Of a DNA stretch of 64,000 nucleotides, positions 1-54,362 are shown piece after piece (the first letter of the stretch is position 1; the number at the start of each line of letters is the position of its first letter). The translations under genes and the position numbers were made by a program. The stretch spans positions 1,175,643 through 1,239,642 of the forward strand of contig CAJFCJ010000014.1 in assembly GCA_904063045.1 (NCBI GenBank), in the 5' to 3' direction. The notes below the pieces were generated by a model. That model was not told the DNA's origin, made no database searches, and was given only the letters and a program-made list of their open reading frames with translations. The stretch comes from Dimorphilus gyrociliatus (lineage: Eukaryota > Animalia > Annelida).

Positions 1-126
1 ATCAACTTTTCCATTAAATATATAATGTTTTGTAACTTTTTATTATTTAATCCGACTTCTTTTTATATATATATGTATATAAAAAACTAGTCCCAAACGA
101 TTAATATAATCGTTTCTGACAAATAA

Positions 127-279
127 GACAAACATTTTATTATAAATAATGCTTTCATATGGGAAGTTTATCAATTATTCCCTCTTTTCTTTCTGAAATT
201 CGATGGTGTAGATAAAAAAAAGGCGGGTTATTTAAGTGATGATGAAGAGAAAATGGCGGTAGCTTTTGAAGAGAATTAA
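127..279 (+). CDS. Possible terminal exon of a gene starting upstream of the window
   Basis: Open frame reading ...FIWEVYQLFPLFFLKFDGVDKKKAGYLSDDEEKMAVAFEEN*: a hydrophobic stretch then a charged tail. No clear splice acceptor and no homology recognised. Confidence 0.2.
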   Translation, partial: DKHFIINNAFIWEVYQLFPLFFLKFDGVDKKKAGYLSDDEEKMAVAFEEN

Positions 280-35970: not shown

Positions 35971-36777
35971 TCAATACTGCGACCAATGAAGTAAACTGGA
36001 ACGTTTCCATTCTGCCTTAGCACGTTCCGTATAGATAAAATGCGAACATAGCGTAACGACTTGTGTAATTCTAAGGATCGTATGCTTCATTCTTCTCTTA
36101 TCCCTGCCGCTTAACTTCTCTCGCTTTATAGCGCGCATGATCTCCTCCAAAGGACTTGAATTGAATAAGCCGAACGAAGAAACTTCAAGCGTATAAATTG
36201 TCAACGGTTTTCCGTTCAATTCTGTAAGACCCTTGAACTTATCTTTCTTACCATGCTTGTAGACGTCTAAGCTAAGTTCGTTGCAGACGGTCAATTCTAA
36301 ACCAAAATATCTTTCTTCGGTTTCAACTATTATACCTGGTAGCTTTCCCTTCATTTCTTCTTCCTTCGTTAATTCATCGATAGGAGGATAACGTTGCAAG
36401 TCGTTCGCAAAAACCTTGTGTTCGCCGAATCCCTTTAACCAATCAGCCAATAGACGAGCGACAGAATCATGTCTCCACTTATAACGGTCTGCAGCGTCCT
36501 TGCAGTTTGACAAAACATGAATATCATTCACATCAGTTTTCTTACACAAAAAACATTCGTTCCCAACGGACAAACCGTCCGTAAGGAAAGTTAAAATAGT
36601 GCGTTGAGCGGCTAAGGCACACCATTCGACATTTTCGCACCATCTTCGTTTATCCAGCCAACGTAGGGATCTTTCAGTCGGCCAACCAACAAAAGCTTGT
36701 TCATGAATTGAAATAATACGGTCATAGACCGTTGAATGATAAAAAGTTGGCTTTCTATGAGAAAAGTATGACGGCAT
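35971..36777 (-). CDS. RT-less retrotransposon-derived protein 2: CCHC knuckle, RHD motif and RLE fold, with the catalytic PD changed to PG
   Basis: CFLCKKTDVNDIHVLSNC, DRYKWRHDSV, KLPGIIV...LELTVCNE, KKDKF, LEVSSFG, SHFIYTER. Intact 268 codons; the frame is open to 36843. Confidence 0.85.
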   Translation of the reverse strand: MPSYFSHRKPTFYHSTVYDRIISIHEQAFVGWPTERSLRWLDKRRWCENVEWCALAAQRTILTFLTDGLSVGNECFLCKKTDVNDIHVLSNCKDAADRYKWRHDSVARLLADWLKGFGEHKVFANDLQRYPPIDELTKEEEMKGKLPGIIVETEERYFGLELTVCNELSLDVYKHGKKDKFKGLTELNGKPLTIYTLEVSSFGLFNSSPLEEIMRAIKREKLSGRDKRRMKHTILRITQVVTLCSHFIYTERAKAEWKRSSLLHWSQY

Positions 36778-36947: not shown

Positions 36948-37478
36948 ATGTCAGGCACAAAATATCAACCTATTAAGAGTAATCTACAAGTCTATCCTGT
37001 AAGATTTTTGCCGGATGAAGATTTGAAGGAATGTTTAAAAAGATTTGTTCAGGATGCCGATTTAAAAGCTCCATTTATTCTTACTTGTTGTGGAAGTTTG
37101 AAAAGAGCGAAAATTCGTTTGGCTGATGCAGAAGTGGGCAAAGATAACAAAACTGTCAGATATATTTTCTAAATTGCCTATCTCTAGACTAAATTCTTGA
37201 AATATTTTCAATCAATTCCTATTAATTTATCATAATAGATTACTTTGGATGGCCGCTACGAAATAATATCTTTGGTAGGAACCTTAAATGGTAATGGTCA
37301 TCTTCATATATCTTTGGCTGATGACAAGGGTCAACTTATTGGTGGGCATGTGGTAAGTGATTTAATCATCTATACAACAGCCGAAGTTGTAATTGGTGAA
37401 TGTAATGACACATTATTTTCACGAGACACATGTGACAAGAGCGGTTGGGATGAATTGGTTGTAACAAAAAAAAATTAA
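36948..37478 (+). CDS. PPC/DUF296-domain protein, 2 exons
   Basis: VYPVRFLPDEDL, ILTCCGSL, YEIISLVGTL, HLHISLADDKGQLIGGH, YTTAEVVI (PPC/DUF296 motifs including HxH...H). Confidence 0.85.
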
Positions 37479-38210
37479 CATAGACAAGATGTTGATGTGC
37501 AACAATAAAATATGCTTAGTGTACTACCTAATAATAAAAATCAAATTAATTACATACCTGATTAATTGAAATGAATATGTTTTGTGTCCTTCTTCTGTTA
37601 CCACCGTTTTGCTTTTCGCGCTTTTTCTCTCCGTTTACGCTTCCATCTTTGATCACAATGCAAATTTTCAATGTTATTTTCGTATTTCAAATAAATTTTG
37701 ATTATGGTTTTTTTTTTAAAAATAACTATACAAATTTAGCTTTATTGTTCATAAAATCTTTATAATAAAGTAATATTTGAAAAATTACAAAACTGTTCAT
37801 ACCGGAAGAGGCAAAACTGAAATTTTTTAAATTTGTATACTCTACTGTAGTTATTATTTTTACTAATTTTCTGTGAAATGGAAAATATTTAATAAAAAAT
37901 AGATATTGATTATTGGTTTACAAAAAGCGCTCTAGTCGAATCTACTAGTACTAATGACAGAATCCTTAAGTAATGATAAATATAATTCAAAAAGAGTGGA
38001 GCATATGTTGAATCAATTCAAAAGTTACTGTAAAAAAGTATTGTAGGGTATTCATCTGTTTAACTATAATAACGTACCGCTAATATTAAGTTATCTTTGT
38101 ATCCAGTACTTATTTTTGAATCGTATTTTTTATTGACTCTGAATGACATTCAATGACTCCTAATTTTCGATTTCTCACAAATAAGAGCTATTTAACAATC
38201 GTCTTAAGAA

Positions 38211-39131
38211 TTATATCAAGTTGTTCATTATTCTAATAACAGATGTGACTTCAAACATGAAGTAGTTACAAGAAAGGTGAGCCTTTTCTAGAACATGTTT
38301 ACTTAGAATAAAAGTATTTGACATCCCACTTGCCTCTTTTACATCTGACTTGACCAAAAAATGTAGCCCGATAACATTTTCATTATAATTTGTGTATGCC
38401 ACTCCTGAAAAAAATGATTACTTTTAATAAACTTAAACACATTCTACATTCTTTAAATATGTTTTACATTGGCAGTCGTTTAATTTTATGAAAATAGTTT
38501 CTAGCTCTTCTTTTAAGCCTTCAAGACCAATACTCTGTATTGCATTTATCAGTAAACCATGAAACTCTGGTAATGTTATATTTGATTTGCTTTGTAAAAT
38601 ATGATTAAGTAGCTTATAATTTATATAGGAGTTAGTATTTTGTTGATGGCAACTTTCTATAAGAGTTTTTGCTTGCCGGTCATACAGAAAAATATAAAAT
38701 GAATCTGTTTTAACACTGGAGGCAACTATTATTTTGACTTTTGGCATATCCGTTTCGAGTCCTTGAAAGAGGATTGCAATTATCTTTTGAAAGAATCAAA
38801 TACAAATGATTACCTTTTATTCTGTCTAAAACCTGTTGCTCTCCAAAGCGTTTTAACGTAATGATCAATTGATCGTAAAAGCTTTGATACCGACATTCAG
38901 CTTTGTCTATTATCTCAAGGTTAATCATTAAACGATTTTGAGTCCCTCTTGCTTCTTGTATCTGTACATGTGACAAGCCTAACTTCAACGCAATCTGACT
39001 TCCATATTCACCAATTACTCGCGAAATTCGATAGATATAATATTGAATATCTTCACTTGTATCTATAGAAGATTACTAATAACAACAAATATTTACAATG
39101 GATAAGAGTTACCTTGTGTCCTATTGGACAT
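38211..39131 (-). CDS. Tandem death-fold protein DD-1 (type A + type B + C-terminal tail)
   Basis: MSNRTQ|DTSEDIQYYIYRISRVIGEYGSQIALKLGLSHVQIQEA...RIK|DSFYIFLY...NYKLL...IQSIGLEGL...KN|GVAYT...LI*. All junctions are phase-1 GT-AG. Confidence 0.65.
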
Positions 39132-39765
39132 TCTTTTCATTTATTGGCTACACGAAATGGTTTCAGAACACTTACAACCATTAATGTGGTTTTAGTTCAA
39201 TTCTAATAAACGACATAATTTAGTTAAATACTGCAAGTTTTTCGTAAAGTAGCTCTATTGCATAATCGTAAGGAGCTTCTGCTATTGTATGATTATTTAT
39301 ATTTTTAAACCTCTTCAGATATTCTAAATCTTAAAATTATCACGCTATTAGATGCAGAACCTCAATTAGTCATTTTACTTAGTAATTCACACAAAATGCC
39401 TTTAATACTTGTGGACCTTTCTTGTATCTAGTATTTTTGGAATATTTTCTGGTTATTGGATCTCATATACCCTGAGTGATGAGTAATGACTATATGCCCC
39501 TATTACAAATGAGCTCTAATTCAATTCTACTAAAAATTTACAATACTTTTAGAAAAGGTTTTAATAGACATTTAAGTCATCTATAGAAAAGTTGTTCAAC
39601 TATGAAATAAACAGTTTTTCGCAAAAAAAACCTTATTTATCAAAAAGGCGGAAGTAAAATTTATGGCATTCAAGTTTCCAATATTGAGTAAATAAGAGGC
39701 CTACTAAATTTTAGAGGAAAATAACTCTATCTCGTCATAAGCATGAATAAGAGGAATGAGCGAAT

Positions 39766-42700
39766 ATGTCAAAAATAAATCAAGTCATATTGTTTTACCA
39801 GCAAGAAATAAAAAGTCTGTTGAATGATGATCAAATTTTTAAGATGGCTGCACGTGAAAACGGCATCATAAATAATCAAGAATCGGAAGAAAATTTCGCT
39901 ATTTTCTTTGAAAACTGTATACTTCGTGTCCCGACTAAAGTTTTCCAAAATTTGTTAATAACCTGTTCTCGACAAACGGCTTCTAAGAGATACGTCGAAT
40001 TGGCTAAAAGCATTGAGTATCCCTGGTCCCAATTAGTTCAAGAGGTTAAAAAGTATGTACGAGAAAAGTTTGTTAATATTTCCATGTTTAAAGACAAGAA
40101 AATCTTAGTTAATTATGAAAATATAATGGCACCAGTGCTAATTTCTACGTATTTAAACAATGATCAAGTTGATGATGTGAAAACTTCAGATGATTTTTTT
40201 AAGCTATCAAATATTATTTATGAAAGAGGAGATAAGATTCTTATCAAAGGAGGACCTGGCATGGGAAAAACATATCATTTTAGGAAAATTCTCTGTTCAT
40301 GGGCTACAGGAGATAAGAGAGACTGTCTTCTTCTAAATCTTCAATTAAAGAAGACAGATCAATGTAATAATATTATAGATGAACTATATAAACATAATTT
40401 TTCACAATCTTCAAAAATTTCTAGGTCACTTTTTGCTTGTATTTTTAATAAGGAATTTTCTGATTTCCATCGGAAAATATTTATTTTGATAGACGGAGCA
40501 GATAAATTCGCAACCCACGTTAAATTTTTGAATAAAATATTTACAAGTTTTTCAAGGCTGGTCATACTTGTATGGTCAAGAAATTGGAAGGCCTATGAAA
40601 TTAGTAATACATATAATCATGTCTATGAAATATTCGGATACGATGAAATTCAGAAAAAAATATTCTTTGATAAGTTTTTCTATGAGTTACACAAAAATAA
40701 AGTTTGTCAACAAGTTACTCGTCAACGTAAATTGAGTAGTGACGATCCTTATCAGGATGTGACAAGCGCTTGGATTCATAATAGATCGGAAAGTGATAAA
40801 TTATGGCAATATTTATGGACTAAAAGAAAAGATTTATTGAAATCTTGTTCAAGGCCATTAGTTGCTTTCACAACAGCTGCTGTTTGGGAAGAAACGAAAG
40901 AATGTAAAGAAGGGTATATATTTGAAAAAGTTATCGATAGACTTTTAAAGAAAAAAGCTATTACTAGAGATACTATATACTATGAAAAGATTATTAATCA
41001 TTGTTCAGAAGAGGCATACAATCACCTTTTTCGTAAATTACCCATTAAAATGACTGATATTATTAAAAAATCGAGTAATATTGGAAATTTACTTATGGTA
41101 AATCCTTACCAGTCTGCTGAAGATCAAGAGTTAGCTTTTATTGATATTTCATTTTTGGAGTACTTTGCAGCCAAACACATAATCAACTGTTTAAAGTCGA
41201 ATGCAAACTGTGAACAAGGACGTTTAGAAAATTCGGTTGCAAAGCAGGCATTCATTCGATACCTGTTTGATCATAATTTAATTGAGTTAAAATTTATATT
41301 TAGATTTATTAGAGAACTATATCCAGAGTTTTTCTCTATTTTACCTGCAAAAAAATCATTTCCTCTCGAACCAATAGATGATGATGCATTACATACGATT
41401 AAACATTATCGAAATGAGAGGGTTTTTAAATTATGTAACACTACCTTAGCATTTCACCATTTGAATCCAATTGTTAAAAGTTTGTCAAGAAATGTTACAA
41501 CTATACAATTAATGAAGGTTAGTCTTAATCTGGATTATTTTTTGGAACTTATAACAACAGAACTTAGCCTTCAGTTAATAAACTTGGAACTTAATTCTTT
41601 AATTGAAGATAAGAGCATATCTGTTAAGATTCTTACTGAAATAACTCGGACTTTTGTAAAGTTGAAAAGCCTTTTTCTTATCAACGTTCCCCTCTGTAAA
41701 AATTTGAGTACACCAGTGGATATATCTTCAAACTCCGTGCTTGGCCTTACTTTGCAGAATTGCTGTTTTTCACCTGACATGATAAGATCTTTTAGCTGTC
41801 AGCGTTTATATAAATTGAATCTATCTTTTAATAAAATCGAAGGTAAGTTTAATTAACATTACATTGTAAATAATCAATCTATTCAAATTTTCCTTCTAAT
41901 TTAGATCAGAAGTTCAAAAATTTTATTAATTGCCTAAAATCTAATCGTAGTTTGAAGGCTATTGACTTTTCTTTTTGTCAGTTGTCAGACACCCATTTTG
42001 ATAGTTTAAAAACACTAATTGAAGAAAATCGTAGTCTTACAGAAATATCCTTACAGGGTAATGATTTTAACATTGAAACAACGAAATCTATAGGAAGTTT
42101 AGCAGATGAAAGGCAATATATCAAAGTATTTGAAATTAACAACTATAAAGCTTTGAGCGAAAACGATAAGAGTTTTATAGCATTTAATCCGAATCTTGAA
42201 GTTTTAACTTTGTCAAAGAGTACAATACTTTCGCCGGTTATTGAGAAAATAATTCAATTGAAAAATCTAGTGGAATTGGGATTATCTTCCATAAACATTA
42301 AATGGATTGGAAATCATTTTATTCACTTGGAAAGTTTTGTTAATTTAAAGATCTTTGACTTCAGCTATAATGATATAACAAATCAAAAGAGAATGTTTCA
42401 TTTATTTAAGGAAATTCTTTCAAGTTCTTTCAATTTGAAAAAACTTGTTATGAACAACTGCAATATAAATCCAGAAGGTCTTAATATTTTAGGGAATTGT
42501 ATGAAAAAACTTTCCAATTTGACTTTTATAAATATTTCAAATAATAATCTAGATTGTGATAGTTTTGAAGAATTCTTAAAATTCAAGATATTCACAGAAC
42601 AGGAAGAAATTGAATTGGATTGTTCAAACTGCCATTTGGAAAGTCAAAATCTTGTTTCATTACTAAAATTACCGAAATTTAAGATTTTAAACTTTTCACA

Positions 42701-45209
42701 GAATTATATAAGCGAATGTTATGTGGAGTTGGAGAATATTGCATTTTTTCAATATCTCAGAGAGCTATATTTAAGAAATTGCAATTTACCGGAAGAATTC
42801 CTACAACAGATTGGTAGGAACTTGGAAAGTTTTAGTATGGTTCAAATATTAGATATATCGGAAAATAACTTTAAGGATAGATCATTGAACTATTTTTTTG
42901 AAAGAGTATCAACGGAGGAAAATAATCTTAAAGAGATCTATATTTATGGCAATGAGTTTTCAAAATATGTAATTTCAAATATGTATTCGTGTATTAAATC
43001 TCTACCAAAGCTTAGTATTCTTAATTCTACTGAATCTGTCAATGATTCGTTATTTAACCAAAGCTTAAATGAGTTAGTTAACAGCAAAAAGTTTAATTTA
43101 AAAATGATCAACAGTTTACTCTCTAACTACGATGATATTGTTGAATTAAAGATATTACAATTATCGCTTATAAGCGGTCAGAGAGAGAGTTATCTTCATT
43201 TGATTTCTGAATTAGAAATCAAAATAAAGTTCATTATTTTCGATGATATCCTTTCGCCAAGTGAGAGTTTAGAAATTAAAAAGATTATTGATCAAAAGGA
43301 AAAGACTGTTGAGAAAATTTCAATTAATGAACATTTTATGAAAAATACAGATTTTTCTCTATTGTCAGCTAATTTTAATTTAACATCATTAAAAATTGCG
43401 TTCAGATCGGAGGAAATAATTAATTCAGAAATTTGGAACTTGCTATCGGGACAGGAGATGCTGAAAACTTTATATTTGTCTAGAGTTAAACTGGAAGATA
43501 GATATTGTCAAAATTATGAGAATATTTTCATTAACCGCGTTTCAAAACTTGAAGAACTAAAGATTTTCTCGTCAACATTCTGTGGAGCAACTATCAGGAA
43601 TTTTATTTCCCGACAAGAACATTTAAAAGTATTGGAGATTAACGAGTCTAAATTTGATAATCTTTTCGATAGAGAATGCAAATGTCGCTCTCTCAAAAAG
43701 CTTACTTTATTCAAATACGAGTTTTCAAGAGAAGAAATGGAAGATTTTAAAATATTCCTTAACAAACAAAGCCATTTGGAAAAATTAAATCTAAAATTAA
43801 ACAATTTAAAAGATAATATTGGTTTGAAAATATTTAGTGACAGCTATAGAAATGATAATAATACAATTACCGAGTTAAGCTTGCACAAATGTAAATTATC
43901 AGTAAATATGGCTGATAAACTTGGGCTGTTTATTGGTCGTCAAACGAATTTGGAAGTTCTTGATTTATCTGGCATAAACATGCAAAATAAAATTGGTTGT
44001 AACTTATTTAGGGCGATCTCGGAAAAATGTTGTAACATCTTAGATTTGAAGTTGGGTAAGTGCACTTTCTCAAGGGATATGGCGGAATACCTAATAGAAT
44101 TTATTGATAATCAAAAACGCTTGAATGTCTTAGATTTAAATTCAACAGATTTATCTGTGCTTAATACGAATAAAGAGTTTCATTTCTGTTATGAAACAAT
44201 CATTTGCCTTAATTTGCATCATTGTACTCTATCAGAAGAAACAGCTTACTTATTTGGAAGACTTATTAGGCATGAGCATTTGGATATACTTAATGTAAGT
44301 AATTTACGATTGGAAGAGTGTGGAAGTAATTTGTTTGAAACTAGTGGGATATGTTCAACTATTTCAGAGATAAATTTATCTGAAACTACATTTTCCTCCT
44401 CTACGGCAAAGACGCTTGGAATATTTCTTGGTTATGCGGTCAATCTTAAAACACTGAATTTGTCTAAAACAAATCTTACAAGAGATATTGGAAAGCAGCT
44501 ATTCTCAAATATCTCCTGTGACTGTTGTAAGATCATAAATCTTAACTTAAGTCTATGCAAATTCTCCGCTTCCATGGCCCAGTATCTTGGAATATTCATT
44601 AAATATCAAGATTCTTTGAACACTCTTGATTTATCCCGCACAGATCTCACAAACGAAATTGGAACCAATATATTCTCACGAAAAGTTGACACTAAATACA
44701 CTAAATACATCTCCAGTTTGATCTTAGTAGGTTGTTTACTGTGTTCTAAAATGTCTACCTCTCTTGGGATATTTATTGAATGTCAAAACAATTTGAGCCA
44801 TCTTAATTTATCACATACAATACTGGAAGGTTCAATAGGAAAAAATCTATTTGAACACGCATCTCATACTTTTCCCACAATATTGACGGTTAACTTGAAA
44901 CGTTGCAAGTTTTCATCAGATATGGTTGAATCTCTTGCTAAGTTCATAGGAAAACAAATTAATCTTACAGAGCTGAATCTATCATCAACTGATCTTTCAC
45001 AAATTGAAAAAGAGCTATTTACAGAAATATCTAAATCTTGTTACTATGTTAGAAATCTAAATATTCAAAACTCCACACTCTCCAATGATCAGACAACTGG
45101 CATTTTACAATTTATAGAGTGTCAAAAATATTTAACTAATGAGGAAAAACTGTTGATAACCCAAGAAATTGTTGAAAGAAAGTTTAGAGCCTCTAAACCC
45201 TTGATATAA
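39766..45209 (+). CDS. NLR: CARD-like N-terminus, NACHT, winged helix and very long LRR (~1793 aa, 2 exons)
   Basis: Walker A GGPGMGKT (40249-40272), Walker B IFILIDGADK, sensor-1-like VWSR, FIDISFLEYFAA and many LxxLxLSxN repeats. The 62-nt intron 41843-41904 joins the two long ORFs in frame. Confidence 0.92.
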
Positions 45210-45339
45210 ACAGATATGAATATATTGTTAACTATTAAAAGAAGACTATGATAATTTTGTTAAATAATATTTTTTATCTTGTCGTATCGACTTTTCCCCT
45301 TCAACTTTCTGTTTTGATATGTGTTCCATTGACAAACAG

Positions 45340-46110
45340 TTAGGTAGGTATATCCATCATAGTGTCTGACCTGTTCAATATAGAAAATTTATATAAGCTA
45401 AAGAGCTTTATCAGTTTAATTTCATCTATTAACCCATATGTTTCTTCCTGCGAGAACGGTAGACTTCTATTCAACAACTCGTTCCATTTTATTCTCAATT
45501 TTTTAGAAGCACGAGCATTTCCAATGTCTACTAAAGCTTGGAGAATAGTATTAACTCTGCTTTGAATTTTGTCCTTTTCACTAGTAGATGGCAAATATTC
45601 TTGATTATTTGACCATTTTTGCAAACATTTCAAATTAACTTGAAAAAAATCTGGGGTTTCTTCATGCCTTCTCTGACCTAAGCTATCCATCGCTTTGAGT
45701 CCTAATAGACGATAATAAAATCTATCATCTTGAATTTTTTCAGAAAGCTTCCTAATGAGTTGTGTTTCAGATTGTGCTTCACCTAAGTATTAATATTTGA
45801 AATAACCTTCACAAAATTCTTTACTATACTGTATATACAATATATTTACTTATTTACCTAACAAATGTAGATAGCCTTTATTACCAGACTCCGTTAATGC
45901 TTGCTTAACACACGTTCTAAAATTATTATCTTCAATTTCCCACAGATCATTCATTAACCTTTGAAGGTCGTTTTCATATGGCGTTCGAACCTGTACACAT
46001 TGAACTTCAGCTATTTCCCAACCTAACTGTAACATCAAACTTTGACCTTTATTTGAAACAATTTCAGCTACATGAACGAGAAATAAATCGTAAGCCTTAG
46101 ACGCTTCCAT
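45340..46110 (-). CDS. Tandem death-fold protein DD-2 (type A + type B)
   Basis: FLVHVAEIVSNKGQSLMLQLGWEIAEV...LHLL|GEAQ...QDDRFYYRLLG...NLKCLQKW...LQALVDIG. The 3' end is uncertain. Confidence 0.65.
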
Positions 46111-46430
46111 TCTCGAGAATGACTATGTGATTACCAGTTCATATATGGTTATTAAAGGTTAATAACCATCTAAAATATACTTTTAAGAATTATTGAAGGT
46201 TATAGTTCTTATAGTTTTATAGTTAAATAAAGTTTAGAATTGTATTTGTAAACAAAAGTCTCTTTTCTACTTCGTAAAATACATAAAACATTTTTATGCA
46301 TTTTTAACTGTTCAAGCAATCTTTCACGTTTCACTATTTTTTTCTTGTAAATCATATACTCTTCATTCAGTATTCATATAATACTCTTTGAATGTTGAAG
46401 AGGTTTAATGTTAGCTGTACAGTAGTCAAA

Positions 46431-47818
46431 TTATCCATTAAAACTATGTATCTCCGATTCACACGAATACGATAGTTCTCTACAGGATTCTGTCTGCCGT
46501 TCTAGATATATTTTTTAAAAATAACTATTAATCAGTAATTGCATATTAAGCAAGTATTTACCACCTGAGTGTCCATTAGCAGCAGGAACTTCATTTAAAC
46601 TTCTCCAGAAATCATTTATTTTTTCTAAAGTATTCAAATGTCCTAATTCTGATAGGACTCTATTTATGGTGCCTCTCAAAACTATTTCGCTTAAATTACT
46701 ATTGTTTCTACAAAATAGCTGTAGTAATTCATAGTTGACGTCAGAATAGTGTTTTTTTGTTGTCACCATTTTCAATGATACTTCGTATTCATCAAATCCA
46801 CAAATAAATCTAAAAAAATTTTCTTCACCTACTTGGCTTGATGTAATCATTATCCATTTTTCTATGTTACCTTCACTCTCTAGTTGGAACAAAAAGGATT
46901 GTTTATGATAGAAATAAATTGATTTAATAACTTTTACCTAGTATAGACACTAAATCATTCCTTTTAAGACATTTTAAAACTCTCATCATTTGTGCTTTAA
47001 GTGCATCCGAACCAACAATTTGTAACTTTTGTCTTAATGCTATCCTTCTCGCGTCTACAATTGTACATGAACCACTTGCTTTTTGTACATCATCATAAGA
47101 CATTCCCAAATTTAATGCTAAAGTAGGACCTTCGGAGGACAACAATTCGGCTAATTTCCTTAAATATTCTTCAACTGTAATTAAATTAAAATCACATAAA
47201 TTAATGGGAAAAATTCAAGTCTACTACATTTGTCTCGTGTTTCAGGACGAGCTGCTGGTCTTTCATTTGAATGCTGAAGATTATTAACGGTTGGGTCATT
47301 TGCTTATGTTGAAAAAGACTATATTATTAATAATACAGCATAAAGGACATTAATAAAGTTACCCCTGTTACTGGATACTGTCAGACGTCGCCACCCTTCA
47401 TCCAACGATGTAGCAATTTCAGTTTTACCCATTATCCTTAACGCCTCTAATATTTTATCCTTCTTCTCTTCCTCCGATGGAATTCTCACTGTTACCCATT
47501 TCAGATAGGCATACGTTAATTCTGTTAATCAGAATAGAATGATATACTGTTTTATTACCATACATGATATTTATGACAAATACCGGAATTTGATGCTACT
47601 ATATGTATACCATGGCGACGTATTTCTTCCTCTATAATTTTTCTATCGATACTTTGATCAATACGAATTTGTTGAGTTACAACTTTGTCGATTAGGCGTC
47701 TTCTCACCTCCTCCAGATTTTCTGGTTCCATTCCCAATTCAATAGCTAACTGTTCACCATACTCGCTAACTTCATCAGCGATAGTTTTTAGAAACTGTAG
47801 CAGCACTGGAGAATTCAT
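46431..47818 (-). CDS. Tandem death-fold protein DD-3 (type A + type A + type B), 6 exons
   Basis: FLKTIADEVSEYGEQLAIELGM; YLRKLAELLSSEGPTLALNLGMSYDDV; EENFFRFICG...NYELL...LSELG. Phase-1 introns throughout; stop at 46431. Confidence 0.7.
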
Positions 47819-47860
47819 ATTCTGACAGTTTAGAGTAACAATCTAAATAGGAAACTAAAC

Positions 47861-47872
47861 CGCGCATGCGCA
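47861..47872. promoter_or_regulatory. NRF1/Ewg-type motif upstream of DD-3
   Basis: CGCGCATGCGCA matches YGCGCAYGCGCR, about 45 bp upstream of ATG 47818, in very AT-rich surroundings. Confidence 0.5.
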
Positions 47873-48106
47873 TCAGAAACCAGTCTATCTATTTTCGTTT
47901 TTAAAAGCAAACTTTAACAGTCCGATTGAACGAAGAAAGAAAGTAATAATATCCTCGAATCAAAAATAATCAAAACAATTTATTATATTAGGCATAAAAC
48001 TACTGTTTGTAGTTATAACTCGACGAAGAGAAAAAGTATTCATTCTTCATATTCGGTTTCAAAATTTAAACATATTAACAGTTATTACTGAAAAACAATT
48101 ACGTAT

Positions 48107-49001
48107 TTAAAATCTCTTATCATTTTCTTTCCTTGAAGGAATTACTGCGAATTTCATATTGATAAATTCATTCTTCGAACAATCTTGCACATCTATTTTA
48201 AAAACAATATCAAATATTAAGTTAAAATGGAGAATGTAAACAATGAACAAATTTTTACCTAATCCTTCGTTATTAGCCGAAGGAAGTACTTTCGCACTTT
48301 TTTCACTAACGCGTTTCCTGTCAATTTTATATTCCTCATTCAACTCTTCTGCAAATTCTTTCATAAGGCGGAATGTCTTCTTTCTACCAATTTCAAGTAA
48401 AGCCGTCCCAAGATCTTCGGCTAATTGAGAGAAAGTTTTGTTTGAATGTTCTTTTGAGTACCTATCTAATAATTCATAAGCCAAATCTGAATGATTTCTG
48501 TGCTGTCTTAAGCTTGAAAATACTGATTGTGCGTTATCATATCCATATAATAATATATAAAATTTACTATCCGTTACTGAAGTTGATATGATAGAGAAAA
48601 TTTCATTATAGCCATTATCGATTGAAGCATTTTCTTTAAAATTACATACATTAATACAAGTGTATTCAGTATTTTAATTAATTAACCTATTTTACTGTAA
48701 ACGTCTTCCCTTCCACAAGCTTTAAGATGTATTTTGGCTTCGCTTAAAAACTTTGATCCAAGTTTTGTATGAGCTTTAACGCAAATTTCATATCTTACTC
48801 CAAAGCTGGATGGCAAGCGTTTTATATCTGATATCTGTTTGTCATCTAAACCTAAATGCAACATAAATTTCTCCCAATCTTGAGACAGGTAATTCGATAA
48901 TTTTAGAGCAAAATGTTTAAATTTCTCCTCTAATCACAAGTATAAAATCAGTTATAAAGTAATATTGTTATTCAATGCCTACCTCTGGACTTTTCATTCA
49001 T
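48107..49001 (-). CDS. Tandem death-fold protein DD-4 (canonical death domain + type B), 4 exons
   Basis: MNEKSR|EEKFKHFALKLSNYLSQDWEKFMLHLGLDDKQISDIK (classic DD W..L...LG) then DSKFYILLYG...AYELL...LLEIG; phase-1 introns. Confidence 0.75.
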
Positions 49002-50322
49002 CGGGAATAAAGTGTGGTTTGAAGCCTAATTTCACAAAGTTGTGGTTATAAAATATGAGGAATGGTTTTCAAGCGAGGTAGGAATTTTAGTTAATACTAT
49101 ATAAATTTAATTTAAAAATATATATATAGTTTATTTTATTGGTAAATAAAAAAAGATGACAAAAATTGATTGTATTATTTAAAACAAGGCATCGTCTGCT
49201 ATATGAGAAAAAACAGAACAGGTACAACAGGAAGTAGAACAAATGGCGCAAAATTCAAAAAATTTCGCAAAAGTAATTTTGCATATATATCTAACTTTAC
49301 ACATTATTAACATCAATATATGATCCATAGTATTTACATCTGCTATTTACACACCTTTAAATCATTAGTGTGTATAAATTTGTACTGTATATTTGTAAAT
49401 TTGTAAATTTTAAACAACTGCTTTAATTCATTCTTTTCACTTTTCTCAAAAATTCAACTCTACGATTTTTGAGCGCCATTTGCTTTTTTTGATTATATTT
49501 AACCTAAATAGTCTGTTTATTAATATGTAATAAAATAATAATAGTAATATTGAGACGTTATCTGTCTAAAAAGTCTATATCTTAATGGAGGATTCTATTC
49601 AGCTAGTTTTTCTATTAAATAGCTCTATTTAAGAAAAGAATTATTAAACTTTCCTATAGGTTGTTTGTATATATTTATATTAATATAAAGATATATAAAT
49701 TAATCCTGTCATAATTGTGAATAGAAAGCCTTTTCGTTTTGTATTTTTGAATATTTGAAGTAGTACTAAAAATGACTGCTAAGAGGCTCTCTTTTATTAA
49801 CAAAAGAGATTTCTTTCCTTTTATCAAAACGCTTCTGATTTGAATATTTTCTATATTCGTTATATGTTAATTAGTTTAATTAGTTTAAAATTAAAATATT
49901 TCTTTTCTTAGCTAGTCAATAATTTATCTAATTATCTTAGAATATCTCTATTAGTTTTCATAAGATATTTCATTTTGTATAGTAATTAGATTCGTTTAAA
50001 TTATTTAATGAATTAAAATAGCTATTATCAAATAGTTGTGCGTTTAACAAACAGGATTGAAAGCACTTTACAAAAGTTTACATAATGTTTTAAAAATTTT
50101 AACCAATAGATGTCGCCAGTACTGTTGATAAACTGGTATCCAATTGCTATTGTCAATATTAGTGAAAACAGTTTTGTAAAGAGATCGGAGCCAAGATCCA
50201 GGCCAGTTCGTTTTGCACCTTCAAGGAGGTCTGACTATTCTAACGAAAAAACCAGGTTTTTCGGACTAACAACCGGGTATTAGTAAATTTCTTTTTTACC
50301 GCCGCATGGCGGTTCGTGCGAA

Positions 50323-53300
50323 ATGGAAAATTTGATTCCCAATATACGCAAACTTGGTAAACAACCCATTCTTCGCCGAAAGAGTAAACATGTTCCATTA
50401 GCTGACAGAGTAAGTTGAAAAATTTTCATGAATTGAATAACTTTGAGTTGAATGGTAAAAAAGGAAATTGATTTCAGGCCTGTTTAGAGAGAGTTCTCGG
50501 CTTGACGGTCACAAACGGCGCCTGTCTAGCGGCTGCTTGCGACGATGGACAGCTGGCGTACACTGCTGGTTGCGTTCTGGTTTTATATGACTCAAAAACG
50601 GATGCACAAAGACACGTTATTAATCATGCACGAAAAATTTTGACCTGCGTTGCTTTCAGTCCAGACGGACGAAATTTGGCTACAGGCGAAAGTGGCCATG
50701 ATCCTCATGCTCGCGTCTGGTCAAAAGCGGATCTACAATGTGTCGCTTCTCTTGGCCCTCTCCATAAGTTTAGCATTAACTGTGTTGTGTGGGCAGGTAA
50801 CGATATGCTAGTTTCAGTTGGATCCCAGAACGATCAGCTGGTTACCGTCTGGCAATGGCAAACAGGTAAAGAAATAGCCTCTAACAAGGTCGCTTCAAGG
50901 GTGGTCGACGCCGCTGTGCACGATAACACTCTTGTAACTGTAGGATCTAGGCACGTAAAGTTCTGGTATTTAGGAGATGGTACCCGAGCAGAAAAGAAGG
51001 TATTGTACGGTCGAAATGCTCTTTTAGGAGATGTAAAAGATAATCACTTTGTTGGTGTTCGATGGAATGGTCCTTCCACAGTTTTCGTTCTTACGAAATC
51101 TGCCAAATTTTGTCAAATTGACGCTATCAAGAGAATTATTGTTAAATGGGTTGATGTTCGCGCATCTTCAGGACTTTGCTTAGATATAAATGACCAATGT
51201 GCTTATGTTGGTTGTAACGATGGCATTGTAAGGGTGTTCAGCTGCGATCTAAACTTTATATGTACTTTACCAAGCCCCCATCCTCTAGACGTTGACGTTG
51301 CCTCAAAAATACCAATTCAAACTAGTGATAAATATCCGGACGCAATTGCAGTTCGACAGCATATTGTCAGAGAGAATGGAGAAAAACGTCGGCTAGTGAG
51401 TGTTGTCTATAAGGACAGAAGTTTATATGTTTGGGATATGTCAGATATGAGACGAGGGGTTGGAAAGAAAAGGTCTCATCTCTTTCACTCTGCAGCAGTA
51501 AATGGCATAGATGTATATAATTCAAGTTTTTATACTGTCTCCGGTGATGGAACTTTAAGAGTTTGGACTCTTGACTCGATGTGTGCATCACAAAATATAT
51601 ATAGTAAACATTTATTGAAAATAGTACGTGTTCTACCTGAATCAGAAGGTGCAGCTAAAACTATTGCTTTTGCTGAAGATGGACTTCAGGTAGCTGTCGG
51701 AGATAAAGTTGGTAATATTCATATATACGATACTAAGAGTTGGGAAAAAGTAACCTCATTAGAAGCTCATGACTCAGAAGTTCTTGCACTAAGCTTTGTA
51801 AACCATAAGGGTTTACGGCTGCTGGCTTCAGGATCACGTGACAGAATGCTCCATGTCTTCCATAGAGATCAAAACTACGGTTTAGTAGCCACTCAAATAG
51901 ATCACTCAGCTGCTGTTCAAGGTGTCTTATGGGCAAAGTGTGGAGATGAATTAAAATTAATCTCTTGCTCAGCAGATCGTTCTCTTTTATTTAGAACATT
52001 GAATGTTGACAAACAGACGGGAACAATTGATTTTACTTTAGATAAATATGAAGCTGGAAAAGCAACTTTCTACAACCTGCAGTTAGACAGTAATAAAAAC
52101 CACTTGTTGGCTGCCTGCAATGATAGAACTATCAGAGTTTATAGCATTAGAAGTGGCAAATTGAAAAGAAGCTTGAAAGTAGCAGACGATTGCTCATCAG
52201 TTACGCGTCTACAAACGGACAAGGGAACTTGTAGTGTTATGGCTGTTGTTACAGGTGATAAAACTGTAGAATTACGAGATTCCCATACGGGAGAATGTTG
52301 GGCTGTATTGTGCGGTCACGCAGAACAAGTTTCAGACGTTGCATTCTTACCAGACAATAAGCGCCTTGTCACGGTTGGTGCCGACGGAGTTATCTTAGTG
52401 TGGACTTTACCAACAGAAGTCTCACATACACTAAGATCGAAATCATTAAAAGCGAAAAAGTCGCCTATATCAAACAAAAATGAGATAGCCTCTCCTTCAG
52501 GTAGATTAATGCCGAATATTGACGAAGTTCTCGCTTCCCTCTCTCCAAAAGTTATTTTAAAACCAGAAGATCCTAGTAGTGCAGTTTTACCATCTTGGGC
52601 ACAAAGAGCTGTCGATAATAATGCAACTGGAACTCCTCGATCAAAATGGAAAAGAAATAGTGAACCTATTAGACCAGCATCTGCCCCTATAGTAGTGGCT
52701 GATAGCGGAAGTGACGATGACAGCGAATCTGAATCAATAGATGTCCCGGAGATGCATTCGTCCGAATCTGACGATGCTGTAGAGGTAGAAACAGTTGATG
52801 ATAATGAAGTAGTATATCTACCTCAAAGATCAGATTCTGCTAAGTATGATGTTCATTCAAATTCTCCTGACGCAGAAACTTTTAATAGTGACGACTCTGC
52901 TCCGTCTACCCCTTCTTCGTTGCTACCACCTCCCAGGGAGCAACAGGAAGACACTCCTCTTGATCCATCAAGATTAAGTATCTCAGCTCGTGTTCTATTA
53001 GCTGCCTCCCAGGCAAATAATGCTCAACAATCACCTCCATCACCTACAAATAAGCCTACTGCTGCTCGTCGAAGGTCAGTGAATAACAGTAAACAATCTT
53101 CCTATGCAGCACCAACTTCTGCTTCACTTCAAAAGTCTTCACGCTCAGGAAGCACCATGTCAGTTAATAAAACTTCAACAATGACTTCTAGACGGAGGTC
53201 TCGAGGAACTGGCGATGGTTCTGCTACGGTTACCGCAGCTAAATCCACCCCAAATTTGTTTGACGCTGTTGAGGCAGAGAAGGATGACAAAGCCCTCAGC

Positions 53301-54362
53301 GCACAACGGTATGACTCTTTCGTGAAAAAAGCATTAGCTACAACCAGGCGAGAAGTATCCATTGAAGAAACGAAAGAAATGCTCAAGAAAAGGTCAATAC
53401 AACCCGCTCGAGGACCTCTGGCAGCTGCTCGAAAGCCTATGAGCACTGGCCAAGCGGATGAACCCCGAGAGGGCGAACCAGATGACCCTGCACCTATTCA
53501 ATTGACACCTCCATCAACAAGCTCAACAAATTCGAGTACTAGTCCATCACCCATTAAAGCACCATTAAGCGGAGACTCTTCAAAAACATTCCGACCATTA
53601 TCAATTTGGGCTTCAAACTCGTCACCTAGTAATTCTGACAGAAATACACCGAATGGGGACTCATCCCCACCGAAAACTTATTCTGCATGGAGAACTAGAA
53701 ATAAAGATGAATCGCCCACCAAACACAGAGTTTACAGTTGGAAAAATTCGGATGACGAAACTAACGACTCTGACTCAGTTAAAAGGATAGTAACTAATAG
53801 TGTAGTCTCAAATTCTCCAGCTTCTGTTATGGTTACTAAAAGTGAAACGAATGAAACTGTAGATAAATCGAAATTTATTACGTTTAATCGTGGTAGTACC
53901 GGCAGCGCCAGCCTATCATCCCCTCAAAAAAACTTGAGCAATAACGTTACGAAACCTGATTTACCAAATACATCGTTTGTATCTTGCAGAAGTAGTCTAT
54001 CTTTGGAAGGAGAAGAGGCAGCGGCAGAAGGAGATAATGATGATGACGATGATGACGATGGTGATGTCATTATTGAAAAGAGTCCCCCACTGCCTAGTAC
54101 CCCTGTCCCTCTTAGGAAGATAACTTCAGAAAGTTTGAAAGATGCAATGAATCTAATAGAACGTGCCATCGATTTCTGTAAAGACGATAAAAAGGAAGAA
54201 GTTGAAAGTCGAACGCGAATGAAAGGCGTTTTAAAATTAATTAGTACTAAATTATACAGAGAAGGCTTTTGCTCAGATATTCAAATAGTGAACGACAAAC
54301 TAAACGCAATAGAATTGATGTGTTCGGATTTAAAGAAAGAGTTAGTACTGCCAAATGACTGA
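50323..54362 (+). CDS. MAPKBP1: MAPKBP1/WDR62 WD40-repeat protein, 2 exons
   Basis: LERVLGLTVT, LATGESGHDP, LVSVGSQND, VTVGSRHVKFW, LLASGSRDR, GHAEQV...LVTVGADGVILVW, then a long Ser/Pro-rich tail. Short first exon from ATG 50323. Confidence 0.9.

Follow-up and report, generated by a model that had tools for sequence, protein, structure and literature searches.

We analysed a stretch of 64 kb from contig CAJFCJ010000014.1 of the Dimorphilus gyrociliatus assembly GCA_904063045.1 (hereafter the window, to which all window coordinates refer), which is AT-rich, with a GC content of ~31% by base composition. It holds an NLR receptor gene with a NACHT domain and leucine-rich repeats (LRRs), DgyrCDS9928, which is flanked on both sides by small minus-strand genes built from two recurrent modules, here called A and B. 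A word search with one exon led to DgyrCDS9929 of D. gyrociliatus. We are highly confident that this is a fast-evolving NLR receptor locus, in which a lineage-specific two-module A-B unit was copied around one NACHT-LRR gene. The same locus was followed in a close relative, represented by the Logan assemblies of the runs SRR23372216, SRR23372228, SRR23372229, SRR23372231 and SRR31984831. The public annotation gives the following genes at the locus (aa, amino acids):

39766-45209, plus strand: the NLR DgyrCDS9928, 1793 aa, two exons.
46110-45340, minus strand: DgyrCDS9929, 210 aa.
49001-46431, minus strand: DgyrCDS9930, 593 aa, with only a faint match to Pfam 'Death'.

An earlier reading of the letters of this DNA (the sequence-only reading) had described one NLR at 39766-45209 on the plus strand with four tandem death-fold genes around it, DD-1 upstream and DD-2 to DD-4 downstream (DD, death domain). 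No gene is annotated between 37478 and 39766, the interval in which it put DD-1, for which we predict an A-B gene model (see below). The position of the NLR was exact, with a 100% match to the public model DgyrCDS9928, and both of its flanks hold minus-strand death-fold-like modules, in which Pfam found no other domain. The number of genes, however, is not simply four: there are two annotated downstream genes (210 aa and 593 aa), for which RNA contigs suggest three transcripts (A2-B2; A4-halfB-linker-A3-B3; A5-B5), and the upstream gene DD-1 is unannotated and predicted.

The receptor gene is composed of the following parts (ORF, open reading frame):

39766..41842, plus strand: exon 1, from the ORF and the splice donor read in the sequence, with an orphan 86-aa head, the NACHT and helical domains and the first LRRs.
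39766..40023, plus strand: the N-terminal head, residues 1-86; the BLASTP alignment to the relative's NACHT ORF begins at residue 87.
40237..40680, plus strand: the NACHT NTPase core, residues 158-305, with the P-loop GPGMGKT (Pfam PF05729).
41843..41904, plus strand: intron of 62 nt, GT..AG, phase 1, read from the sequence and in agreement with the 1793-aa public model.
41905..45209, plus strand: exon 2, ~1100 aa of LRRs of the ribonuclease inhibitor (RNI) type and the stop codon (phmmer against PDB).

The NACHT domain matched Pfam PF05729 with 30-32 bits (E 1.5e-7 to 5e-7), above the gathering score of 26.7. The C-terminal ~1100 aa matched ribonuclease inhibitor and the LRRs of NLRP9, NLRP5 and NLRP1 in PDB (phmmer, E 3.6e-12 to 1e-5), and the Pfam LRR models gave no match on these 1100 residues. 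When the two exons were joined across the 62-nt intron, the product was identical to the public 1793-aa protein. DgyrCDS9928 is thus a NACHT and RNI-type-LRR receptor gene. Neither the LRR exon nor the NLR head retrieved a close NLR paralogue in word searches. The Walker B region (40492-40520, plus strand) carries an unusual motif, LIDGADK, versus LIDGIDDS in the relative.

Read along the minus strand, the small genes consist of the two module types, and A always precedes B. We counted five A modules (A1-A5), four full B modules (B1, B2, B3 and B5) and one half B module (B4h). The modules are only 11-25% identical in pairwise comparison. Every module was found by the profile built from the remaining modules (leave-one-out, 18-63 bits for A and 34-85 bits for B), and BLASTP between modules gave E 1e-9 for B3-B5, 3e-7 for B1-B5 and 9e-6 for A1-A3. 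Scanned in six frames with the profiles, the 64 kb yielded no module of either type beyond those flanking the NLR. Their exons, with the evidence for each, are:

39113..39140, minus strand: predicted exon 1 of DD-1, with ATG at 39140 (9 codons and 1 base), ending in phase 1; from the sequence, with the same mini-exon design as exon 1 of DgyrCDS9930.
38814..39062, minus strand: module A1 exon of DD-1; leave-one-out 48 bits; predicted GT..AG introns of 50 and 52 nt, phase 1.
38433..38761, minus strand: module B1 exon of DD-1, with the stop codon; leave-one-out 50 bits; the BLASTP match to B5 given above.
45858..46110, minus strand: exon 1 of DgyrCDS9929, module A2; protein P0001; RNA joint 45780/45856, cut +2; AlphaFold model.
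45434..45782, minus strand: exon 2 of DgyrCDS9929, module B2; P0001; RNA joints; six predicted helices at residues 90-187; leave-one-out 34 bits.
45340..45370, minus strand: last coding exon of DgyrCDS9929 and stop codon; P0001; RNA contigs.
48983..49001, minus strand: exon 1 of DgyrCDS9930, ATG and 6 codons, phase 1; sequence and P0005.
48687..48929, minus strand: module A5 exon; RNA joint 48633/48687; leave-one-out 63 bits.
48259..48633, minus strand: module B5 exon; RNA joints; leave-one-out 73 bits.
48107..48192, minus strand: tail exon after B5; RNA joint 48192/48259; contig cover goes on through 47933-48103.
47822..48145, minus strand: annotated DgyrCDS9930 intron of 324 nt, doubtful; in the public 593-aa model it links A5-B5 to A4 and the rest.
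47584..47818, minus strand: module A4 exon with ATG at 47818, probably the start of a separate gene; RNA joint 47521/47584; leave-one-out 34 bits.
47363..47521, minus strand: half B module B4h, C-terminal helices only; B profile E 8e-4 at profile positions 63-97; RNA joints.
47228..47302, minus strand: 25-codon linker exon, phase 1-1; RNA joints 47174/47228 and 47302/47363; sequence of P0005 (DgyrCDS9930).
46938..47174, minus strand: module A3 exon; RNA joints; leave-one-out 40 bits; paired in the tree with the relative's A3 (support 88/91).
46565..46879, minus strand: module B3 exon; RNA joints; leave-one-out 61 bits; 38% identical to the relative's P0006.
46431..46501, minus strand: last coding exon of DgyrCDS9930; annotation range and RNA contigs; 3' untranslated region to at least 46228.

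Almost every A, B and linker exon has phase 1 at both of its ends (B2 has phase 2 at its end), so that A-B units can be joined in frame with each other, as in A4-halfB-linker-A3-B3, or onto a NACHT exon. Open frames by themselves would be weak evidence: base shuffles give ~0.25 stop-free stretches of 80 or more codons per kb (~16 per window). The 4.6 kb of modules nevertheless hold nine of them, and together with the leave-one-out matches, the nine introns spliced out in RNA contigs and the frames kept in a second species (both below) this is more than chance would give. The frames of the modules stay open over 78-124 codons in this genome of 31% GC. DD-1 (A1-B1) is predicted to be a complete three-exon gene with canonical introns at 38433-39140 on the minus strand, absent from the annotation of GCA_904063045.1. 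It lies head-to-head with the NLR, with 625 nt from ATG to ATG. Downstream of B1, a 63-codon ORF (38211-38402, minus strand) faintly resembles the beginning of a B module (tblastn E 0.16), and may be either a decayed module or one more exon of DD-1.

Evidence for transcription comes from one run of assembled contigs that hold this DNA, covering the downstream block and the 3' part of the NLR. The contigs of this run skip nine minus-strand GT..AG introns of 53-75 nt, indicating that they are RNA-derived. Both the 3' part of the NLR and the downstream A-B genes are thus transcribed; the sequence-only reading had made its proposal depend on expression, and spliced RNA contigs were found for the downstream genes. 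RNA joints confirmed every intron of DgyrCDS9929 and, in DgyrCDS9930, all introns within reach of the contigs except 47822-48145; the contigs end at 48958, short of the first DgyrCDS9930 intron (48930-48982). Intron 47822-48145 had no RNA joint, RNA contigs lie inside it (47933-48103), and its length is 4-6 times that of the nine confirmed introns. When the 324-nt splice is left out, an in-frame stop follows at 48107-48109, and A4 has its own ATG at 47818. On the missing joint, the contig cover inside the intron, this stop and this ATG, we consider that the 593-aa model of DgyrCDS9930 probably merges two genes, A5-B5 and A4-halfB-linker-A3-B3. The NLR and DgyrCDS9929 point towards each other, and 130 nt separate their stop codons (window 45209-45340). 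An RNA contig covers the NLR from 44000 to its stop codon and a further ~1.5 kb beyond that stretch, presumably deeper within the gene. The NLR 3' part and DgyrCDS9929 are covered by a single RNA contig, indicating that their 3' ends overlap.

The sequence-only reading had taken the modules for death folds. For A this held, and for B it is probable only. The A profile (10 sequences) matched the death domain of PIDD at profile positions 9-85 of 91 (E 2.7e-6); further matches were the DDs of ankyrin-1/2/3, p75NTR, RIPK1, FADD and MyD88. Pfam Death (PF00531) was matched singly by three of the 10 A members, with a best E of 1.9e-7; single D. gyrociliatus modules, A2 included, gave no significant Pfam death-fold match. 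By its sequence profile, module A is a true death domain. DgyrCDS9929 (A2-B2) was folded with AlphaFold from an 8-row alignment, from which single A-module rows were dropped and in which B-only rows were kept, as MAFFT mixes of A-B proteins and single modules straddled the modules. The model had a mean pLDDT (predicted local distance difference test) of 75.7 and eleven helices, with A at 3-86 and six B helices at 90-187; pLDDT was 85-95 in the second half. In an exhaustive VIA search with this model, 49 of the 50 best rows were death-fold domains (DD, PYD, DED, CARD). They were led by the FADD DD with Z 13.0 (98 of 99 residues), a level (~13) which by the tool's own note can arise by chance for helical bundles, followed by the ankyrin-G DD (12.1; root mean square deviation 2.3 A, 90 aligned), the PIDD DD (11.1) and LRRD1 (10.9). 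The aligned ranges (e.g. 3..194) span both modules, so the aligned module is not told apart and the fold of B rests on the two-module model. We accepted the death-fold reading of A2-B2 because the VIA list is uniform and the sequence evidence is independent of it. Foldseek with the two-module model against PDB returned only unrelated helical proteins, none significant, and shape searches of the ESM Atlas were uninformative (TM 0.23-0.37). In the Atlas feature search, P0001 (DgyrCDS9929) was nearest to Death-domain clusters (0.86-0.87), which is a lead only.

The B module was also approached through profiles, of 5 sequences early and 8 sequences later. With the larger profiles, hhalign aligned A and B over 87 columns in register (E 1.7e-4, probability 49%), while with 5-sequence profiles it gave nothing. 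The 5-sequence B profile matched the LRRD1 DD at E 0.0045, a protein that is also in the VIA structural list; the 8-sequence B profile had no significant match in PDB, with the LRRD1 DD at E 0.27. Single B members showed weak matches only, to Dredd_N, Death and DED. Module B is therefore a probable, not a proven, divergent six-helix death-fold module.

When the B profile was searched against 1.84 billion representative proteins, eight matches were obtained at E <1e-3; the convincing ones were DgyrCDS9930, DgyrCDS9929 and three proteins from the Logan assemblies of the relative. Within that set the A-B family was thus found only in D. gyrociliatus and its close relative. The relative is close: its WDR62 orthologue is 89% identical in protein, a 268-aa ORF on the other flank 92%, the flanking DNA 77-83%, and synonymous divergence (dS) in the flanks is ~1.15. 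The locus is syntenic, with the same flanking genes and the same module order in both species. One contig of the relative carries, in order, WDR62, A5-like, B5-like, an extra death domain, A4-like, half B, A3-like and B3-like modules and then the LRR tail of the NLR, convergent. The half B module is therefore present there too (ORF L006 9309-9524). At the corresponding place of this syntenic contig no A2-B2 counterpart was found. The extra domain, a canonical DD with a weak match to Pfam Death, lies with the start of a B module at L006 7846-8308 (plus strand) between the B5-like and A4-like ORFs; D. gyrociliatus showed no counterpart of it.

A second contig of the relative carries the 268-aa ORF, PCC genes, two DDE_3 transposase ORFs, an A-B ORF and a NACHT ORF. 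Both of the latter share one strand, and a gap of 10 nt separates the end of the A-B ORF (P0008, 215 aa) from the NACHT ORF that follows. The NACHT ORF lacks an ATG ahead of its P-loop and has 30% identity to the D. gyrociliatus NLR (residues 87-689). A candidate GT..AG intron of 63 nt (L002 10611-10673, phase 1) would join the two frames. Because of this spacing, the lack of an ATG and the phase-matched intron, the receptor of the relative is predicted, from DNA only, to be DD-DD-NACHT-LRR. The same layout is present in four assemblies. The orphan head of the D. gyrociliatus NLR thus sits where the predicted NLR of the relative carries an A-B pair. The DDE_3 transposase-like ORFs (L002 6757-9178, minus strand) lie in the interval that is equivalent to that of DD-1 in D. 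gyrociliatus, and may have been a driver of rearrangement. The relative has a second A-B unit (L010 6476-7073, plus strand), which stands alone beside a TRPM2-like ORF.

Compared between the two species, identity is 30-34% for the NLR and 24-40% for the positional counterparts of the DD modules, versus 89-92% for the flanking genes. Nonsynonymous divergence (dN) is 0.63-0.88 at the NLR and DD locus versus 0.05 in the flanks, and the window 37687-50106 had no blastn match in the relative. Synonymous sites at the locus are saturated, and for this reason we make no claim of positive selection. The sequence comparison shows a fast-evolving locus with reading frames retained in both species. The trees of the A and B modules were almost unresolved, with moderate support only for the A3 and A4 species pairs; a weak split grouped B2 with the head B of the relative. 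We therefore name no orthologue of the relative's head among the D. gyrociliatus units, nor a direction of the rearrangement. The flanks themselves consist of:

35971-36777, minus strand: 268-aa ORF without a Pfam match, under strong constraint as judged from its 92% identity in the relative.
36948-37478, plus strand: PCC-domain gene (public annotation).
50502-54362, plus strand: WDR62/MABP1-like gene, one 1286-codon open frame.

The GC content of the WDR62/MABP1-like frame is 40-42% versus ~31% in the region, with the 89% identity in the relative noted above.

What do the A-B genes do beside the receptor? The most economical reading, towards which we lean, is that the NLR and the A-B proteins are functionally tied through DD-DD contacts, since the A-B unit appears, by prediction, as a receptor head in one of the two species. 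More tentatively, we propose that the free A-B proteins may be signalling subunits, or 'detached heads', of a DD oligomer nucleated by an activated NLR with an A-B head. Receptor oligomerisation would gather the death domains; free A-B proteins would join by homotypic contacts between DDs, in the manner of RAIDD on PIDD or of IRAKs on MyD88; and, with their two distinct module types, they could form a bridge to another death-domain effector whose gene lies elsewhere. In D. gyrociliatus the head function may come in trans, from the promoter region shared with the head-to-head A-B gene, a proposal based on the orphan head of the NLR and the presence of this gene 625 nt away.

Several observations weigh against the functional tie. 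The head of the D. gyrociliatus NLR is not recognisable as a death fold: its 86 residues had no homologue in a word search of 5.8 billion proteins and no match in PDB or in the Atlas (feature search included), hhalign found no similarity to the A or B profiles, either the 5-sequence or the larger ones, and its AlphaFold model, made without an alignment, is predicted helical at a pLDDT of 43.6. At this pLDDT the head model was unusable as a query for structure search and was dropped. Homotypic coupling is accordingly unproven in D. gyrociliatus, because the N-terminus of its NLR has no recognisable death fold. The A-B/NACHT fusion in the relative is a prediction, as is DD-1, which is not in the public annotation. 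No NACHT was found within the 9.8-kb contig of the relative's second A-B unit, and the A-B proteins carry no effector domain. The fold of B has to be counted here too, given the chance level of the VIA scores, the alignments across both modules and the null PDB results of Foldseek and of the 8-sequence profile. The sequence-only reading had proposed a kit of receptor and partners; the A-B pair predicted to be spliced onto the NACHT exon of the relative speaks for it, and the N-terminus of the D. gyrociliatus NLR does not support it. Its 'inflammasome/PIDDosome-like' system is speculation; the locus holds no caspase, kinase or other effector.

A more specific form of the functional tie, which we consider unlikely, is a split animal NLR, in which the receptor body and a two-DD head would have been separated in D. 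gyrociliatus, e.g. by an inversion of the head exons. Receptor and adaptor would then be a head-to-head pair driven from one 625-nt intergenic region, and the further free and concatenated heads would be tunable subunits, the head being still fused in the sister species.

Among the alternatives to signalling subunits, the best, though rather improbable, is that the A-B proteins are decoys or dampers, i.e. death-fold-only inhibitors like POPs, COPs or short FLIP, made from duplicated head exons and capping or competing with the receptor's DD assembly. They indeed hold death-fold modules only, they adjoin a receptor whose relative is predicted to bear the same head, and rapid evolution fits regulators in an arms race. 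The human POPs and COPs also adjoin their parent genes, from which they were born by exon duplication (PMC7555848); for these best-known cases, the sequence-only reading was therefore wrong in its premise that genes of death-fold-only regulators do not usually lie next to that of the receptor. However, POPs and COPs are young and have diverged little from their parents (61-64% identity for POP3 and POP1, PMC7555848), whereas A-B units are 11-25% identical to each other and were kept across a dS >1. The fixed two-module design and the multi-unit chains are more scaffold-like, and the neighbouring D. gyrociliatus NLR has no A-B head to inhibit. We favour signalling subunits over decoys because the units are old and diverged with a conserved order, because two distinct modules were kept, and because they persist beside a receptor without the head.

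It is also possible, but unlikely, that the A-B genes are neighbours of the NLR by descent only: an independent lineage-specific DD family, serving e.g. apoptosis or other DD pathways, would have spread by local tandem duplication, and one copy would have been captured by the NLR of the relative. This explanation agrees with the stand-alone A-B unit of the relative, without NACHT in its contig, with a D. gyrociliatus NLR head unrelated to A and B, and with the phase 1-1 exons, which ease accidental capture. It agrees less well with the positions of the units, since all five in the 64-kb window flank the NLR and none lies elsewhere in it, and since the arrangement is conserved in a species at flank dS ~1.15. 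The NLR and DD genes moreover share an exceptional rate of change between conserved flanks, and the NLR has DD-1 head-to-head and DgyrCDS9929 tail-to-tail, the latter with overlapping transcripts. That the small ORFs are relics (dead exon copies of NLR heads) or annotation artefacts is very improbable. In favour of this view are the absence of DD-1 from the public annotation, the half B module and the doubtful 324-nt intron of the 593-aa model. Against it, spliced RNA contigs exist, each module keeps its frame of 78-124 codons open at 31% GC, the relative has open frames at the corresponding positions although synonymous change is saturated, and the half B module is conserved there too.

To our knowledge, the signalling of invertebrate NLRs is largely unknown. 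It is usually assumed that death-fold heads recruit adaptors whose genes belong to large, unlinked families. At this locus the candidate partners are few, lineage-specific, expressed (the downstream genes) and physically linked to a single receptor, and form a small, explicit set of pairwise interactions. The two species offer a natural comparison of a fused, as predicted, and a split state, and the animal has a genome of 73 Mb and a fast life cycle. The locus also displays phase 1-1 death-domain exons shuffled into multi-module scaffolds and, by prediction, onto NACHT exons. For the annotation, the gain is one unannotated predicted gene (DD-1) and one probably over-merged model (DgyrCDS9930).

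Several known systems resemble this locus in part. DEATH-NACHT-LRR (NLRD-type) receptors were reported from sponge, amphioxus, sea urchin and Lottia, and in Hydra a DEATH-NACHT HyNLR co-precipitates with a DD-caspase (PMC3879445, PMC11508797). They share with the locus a NACHT and LRR receptor with a death-domain head (here predicted, in the sister species), largely single-exon genes and fast lineage-specific evolution. They differ in that the head here is a pair of two distinct DD types and not one DD, and in that the D. gyrociliatus copy has an orphan head and free head units surround the gene. The human POPs and COPs (POP1-3; COP, INCA, ICEBERG) are likewise death-fold-only proteins encoded beside death-fold-bearing genes; the A-B units would be paralogous to the head of the adjacent receptor in the relative, as predicted, and not in D. 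gyrociliatus. In contrast to POPs and COPs, which are single-domain, primate-young and close to their parents, A-B units have two domains, are sometimes concatenated, and despite their low mutual identity are conserved across saturated synonymous divergence.

Bipartite adaptors, such as ASC (PYD-CARD), RAIDD in the PIDDosome and the MyD88-IRAK Myddosome, are also small proteins with two different death-fold modules only, and the best sequence match of module A is the death domain of PIDD. Unlike in adaptors of the ASC and RAIDD type, both A and B appear to be of the DD class rather than of two classes. Tandem death-fold proteins, such as those with the DEDs of caspase-8, cFLIP and vFLIP or the CARDs of RIG-I and MDA5, similarly have two modules fused in one chain. 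Such tandem modules serve regulated oligomerisation, and vFLIP and short cFLIP consist of the tandem only. The A-B subfamily differs in being DD, with no detectable sequence relationship to them and another genomic context.

In the fungal and bacterial NLR-effector clusters, of which NWD2/HET-S is the paradigm (PMC3321046), a receptor gene also adjoins genes that share its N-terminal signalling element, which implies homotypic templating between neighbours. In our case the adjacency is seen in both species, and the shared head element is predicted only in the relative, not in D. gyrociliatus; the shared element is a globular death domain instead of a short amyloid motif, and the partner genes have no killing domain. 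If the split NLR were true, animals would have an equivalent of the NWD2/HET-S clusters or of the paired NLRs of plants, with fused and split states in two close species. DEATH-headed invertebrate NLRs (PMC3879445, PMC11508797), primate death-fold-only genes beside their parents (PMC7555848) and fungal NLR-partner clusters (PMC3321046) are known already, and because of these three precedents we regard the locus as a variant of known arrangements and not as a new kind.

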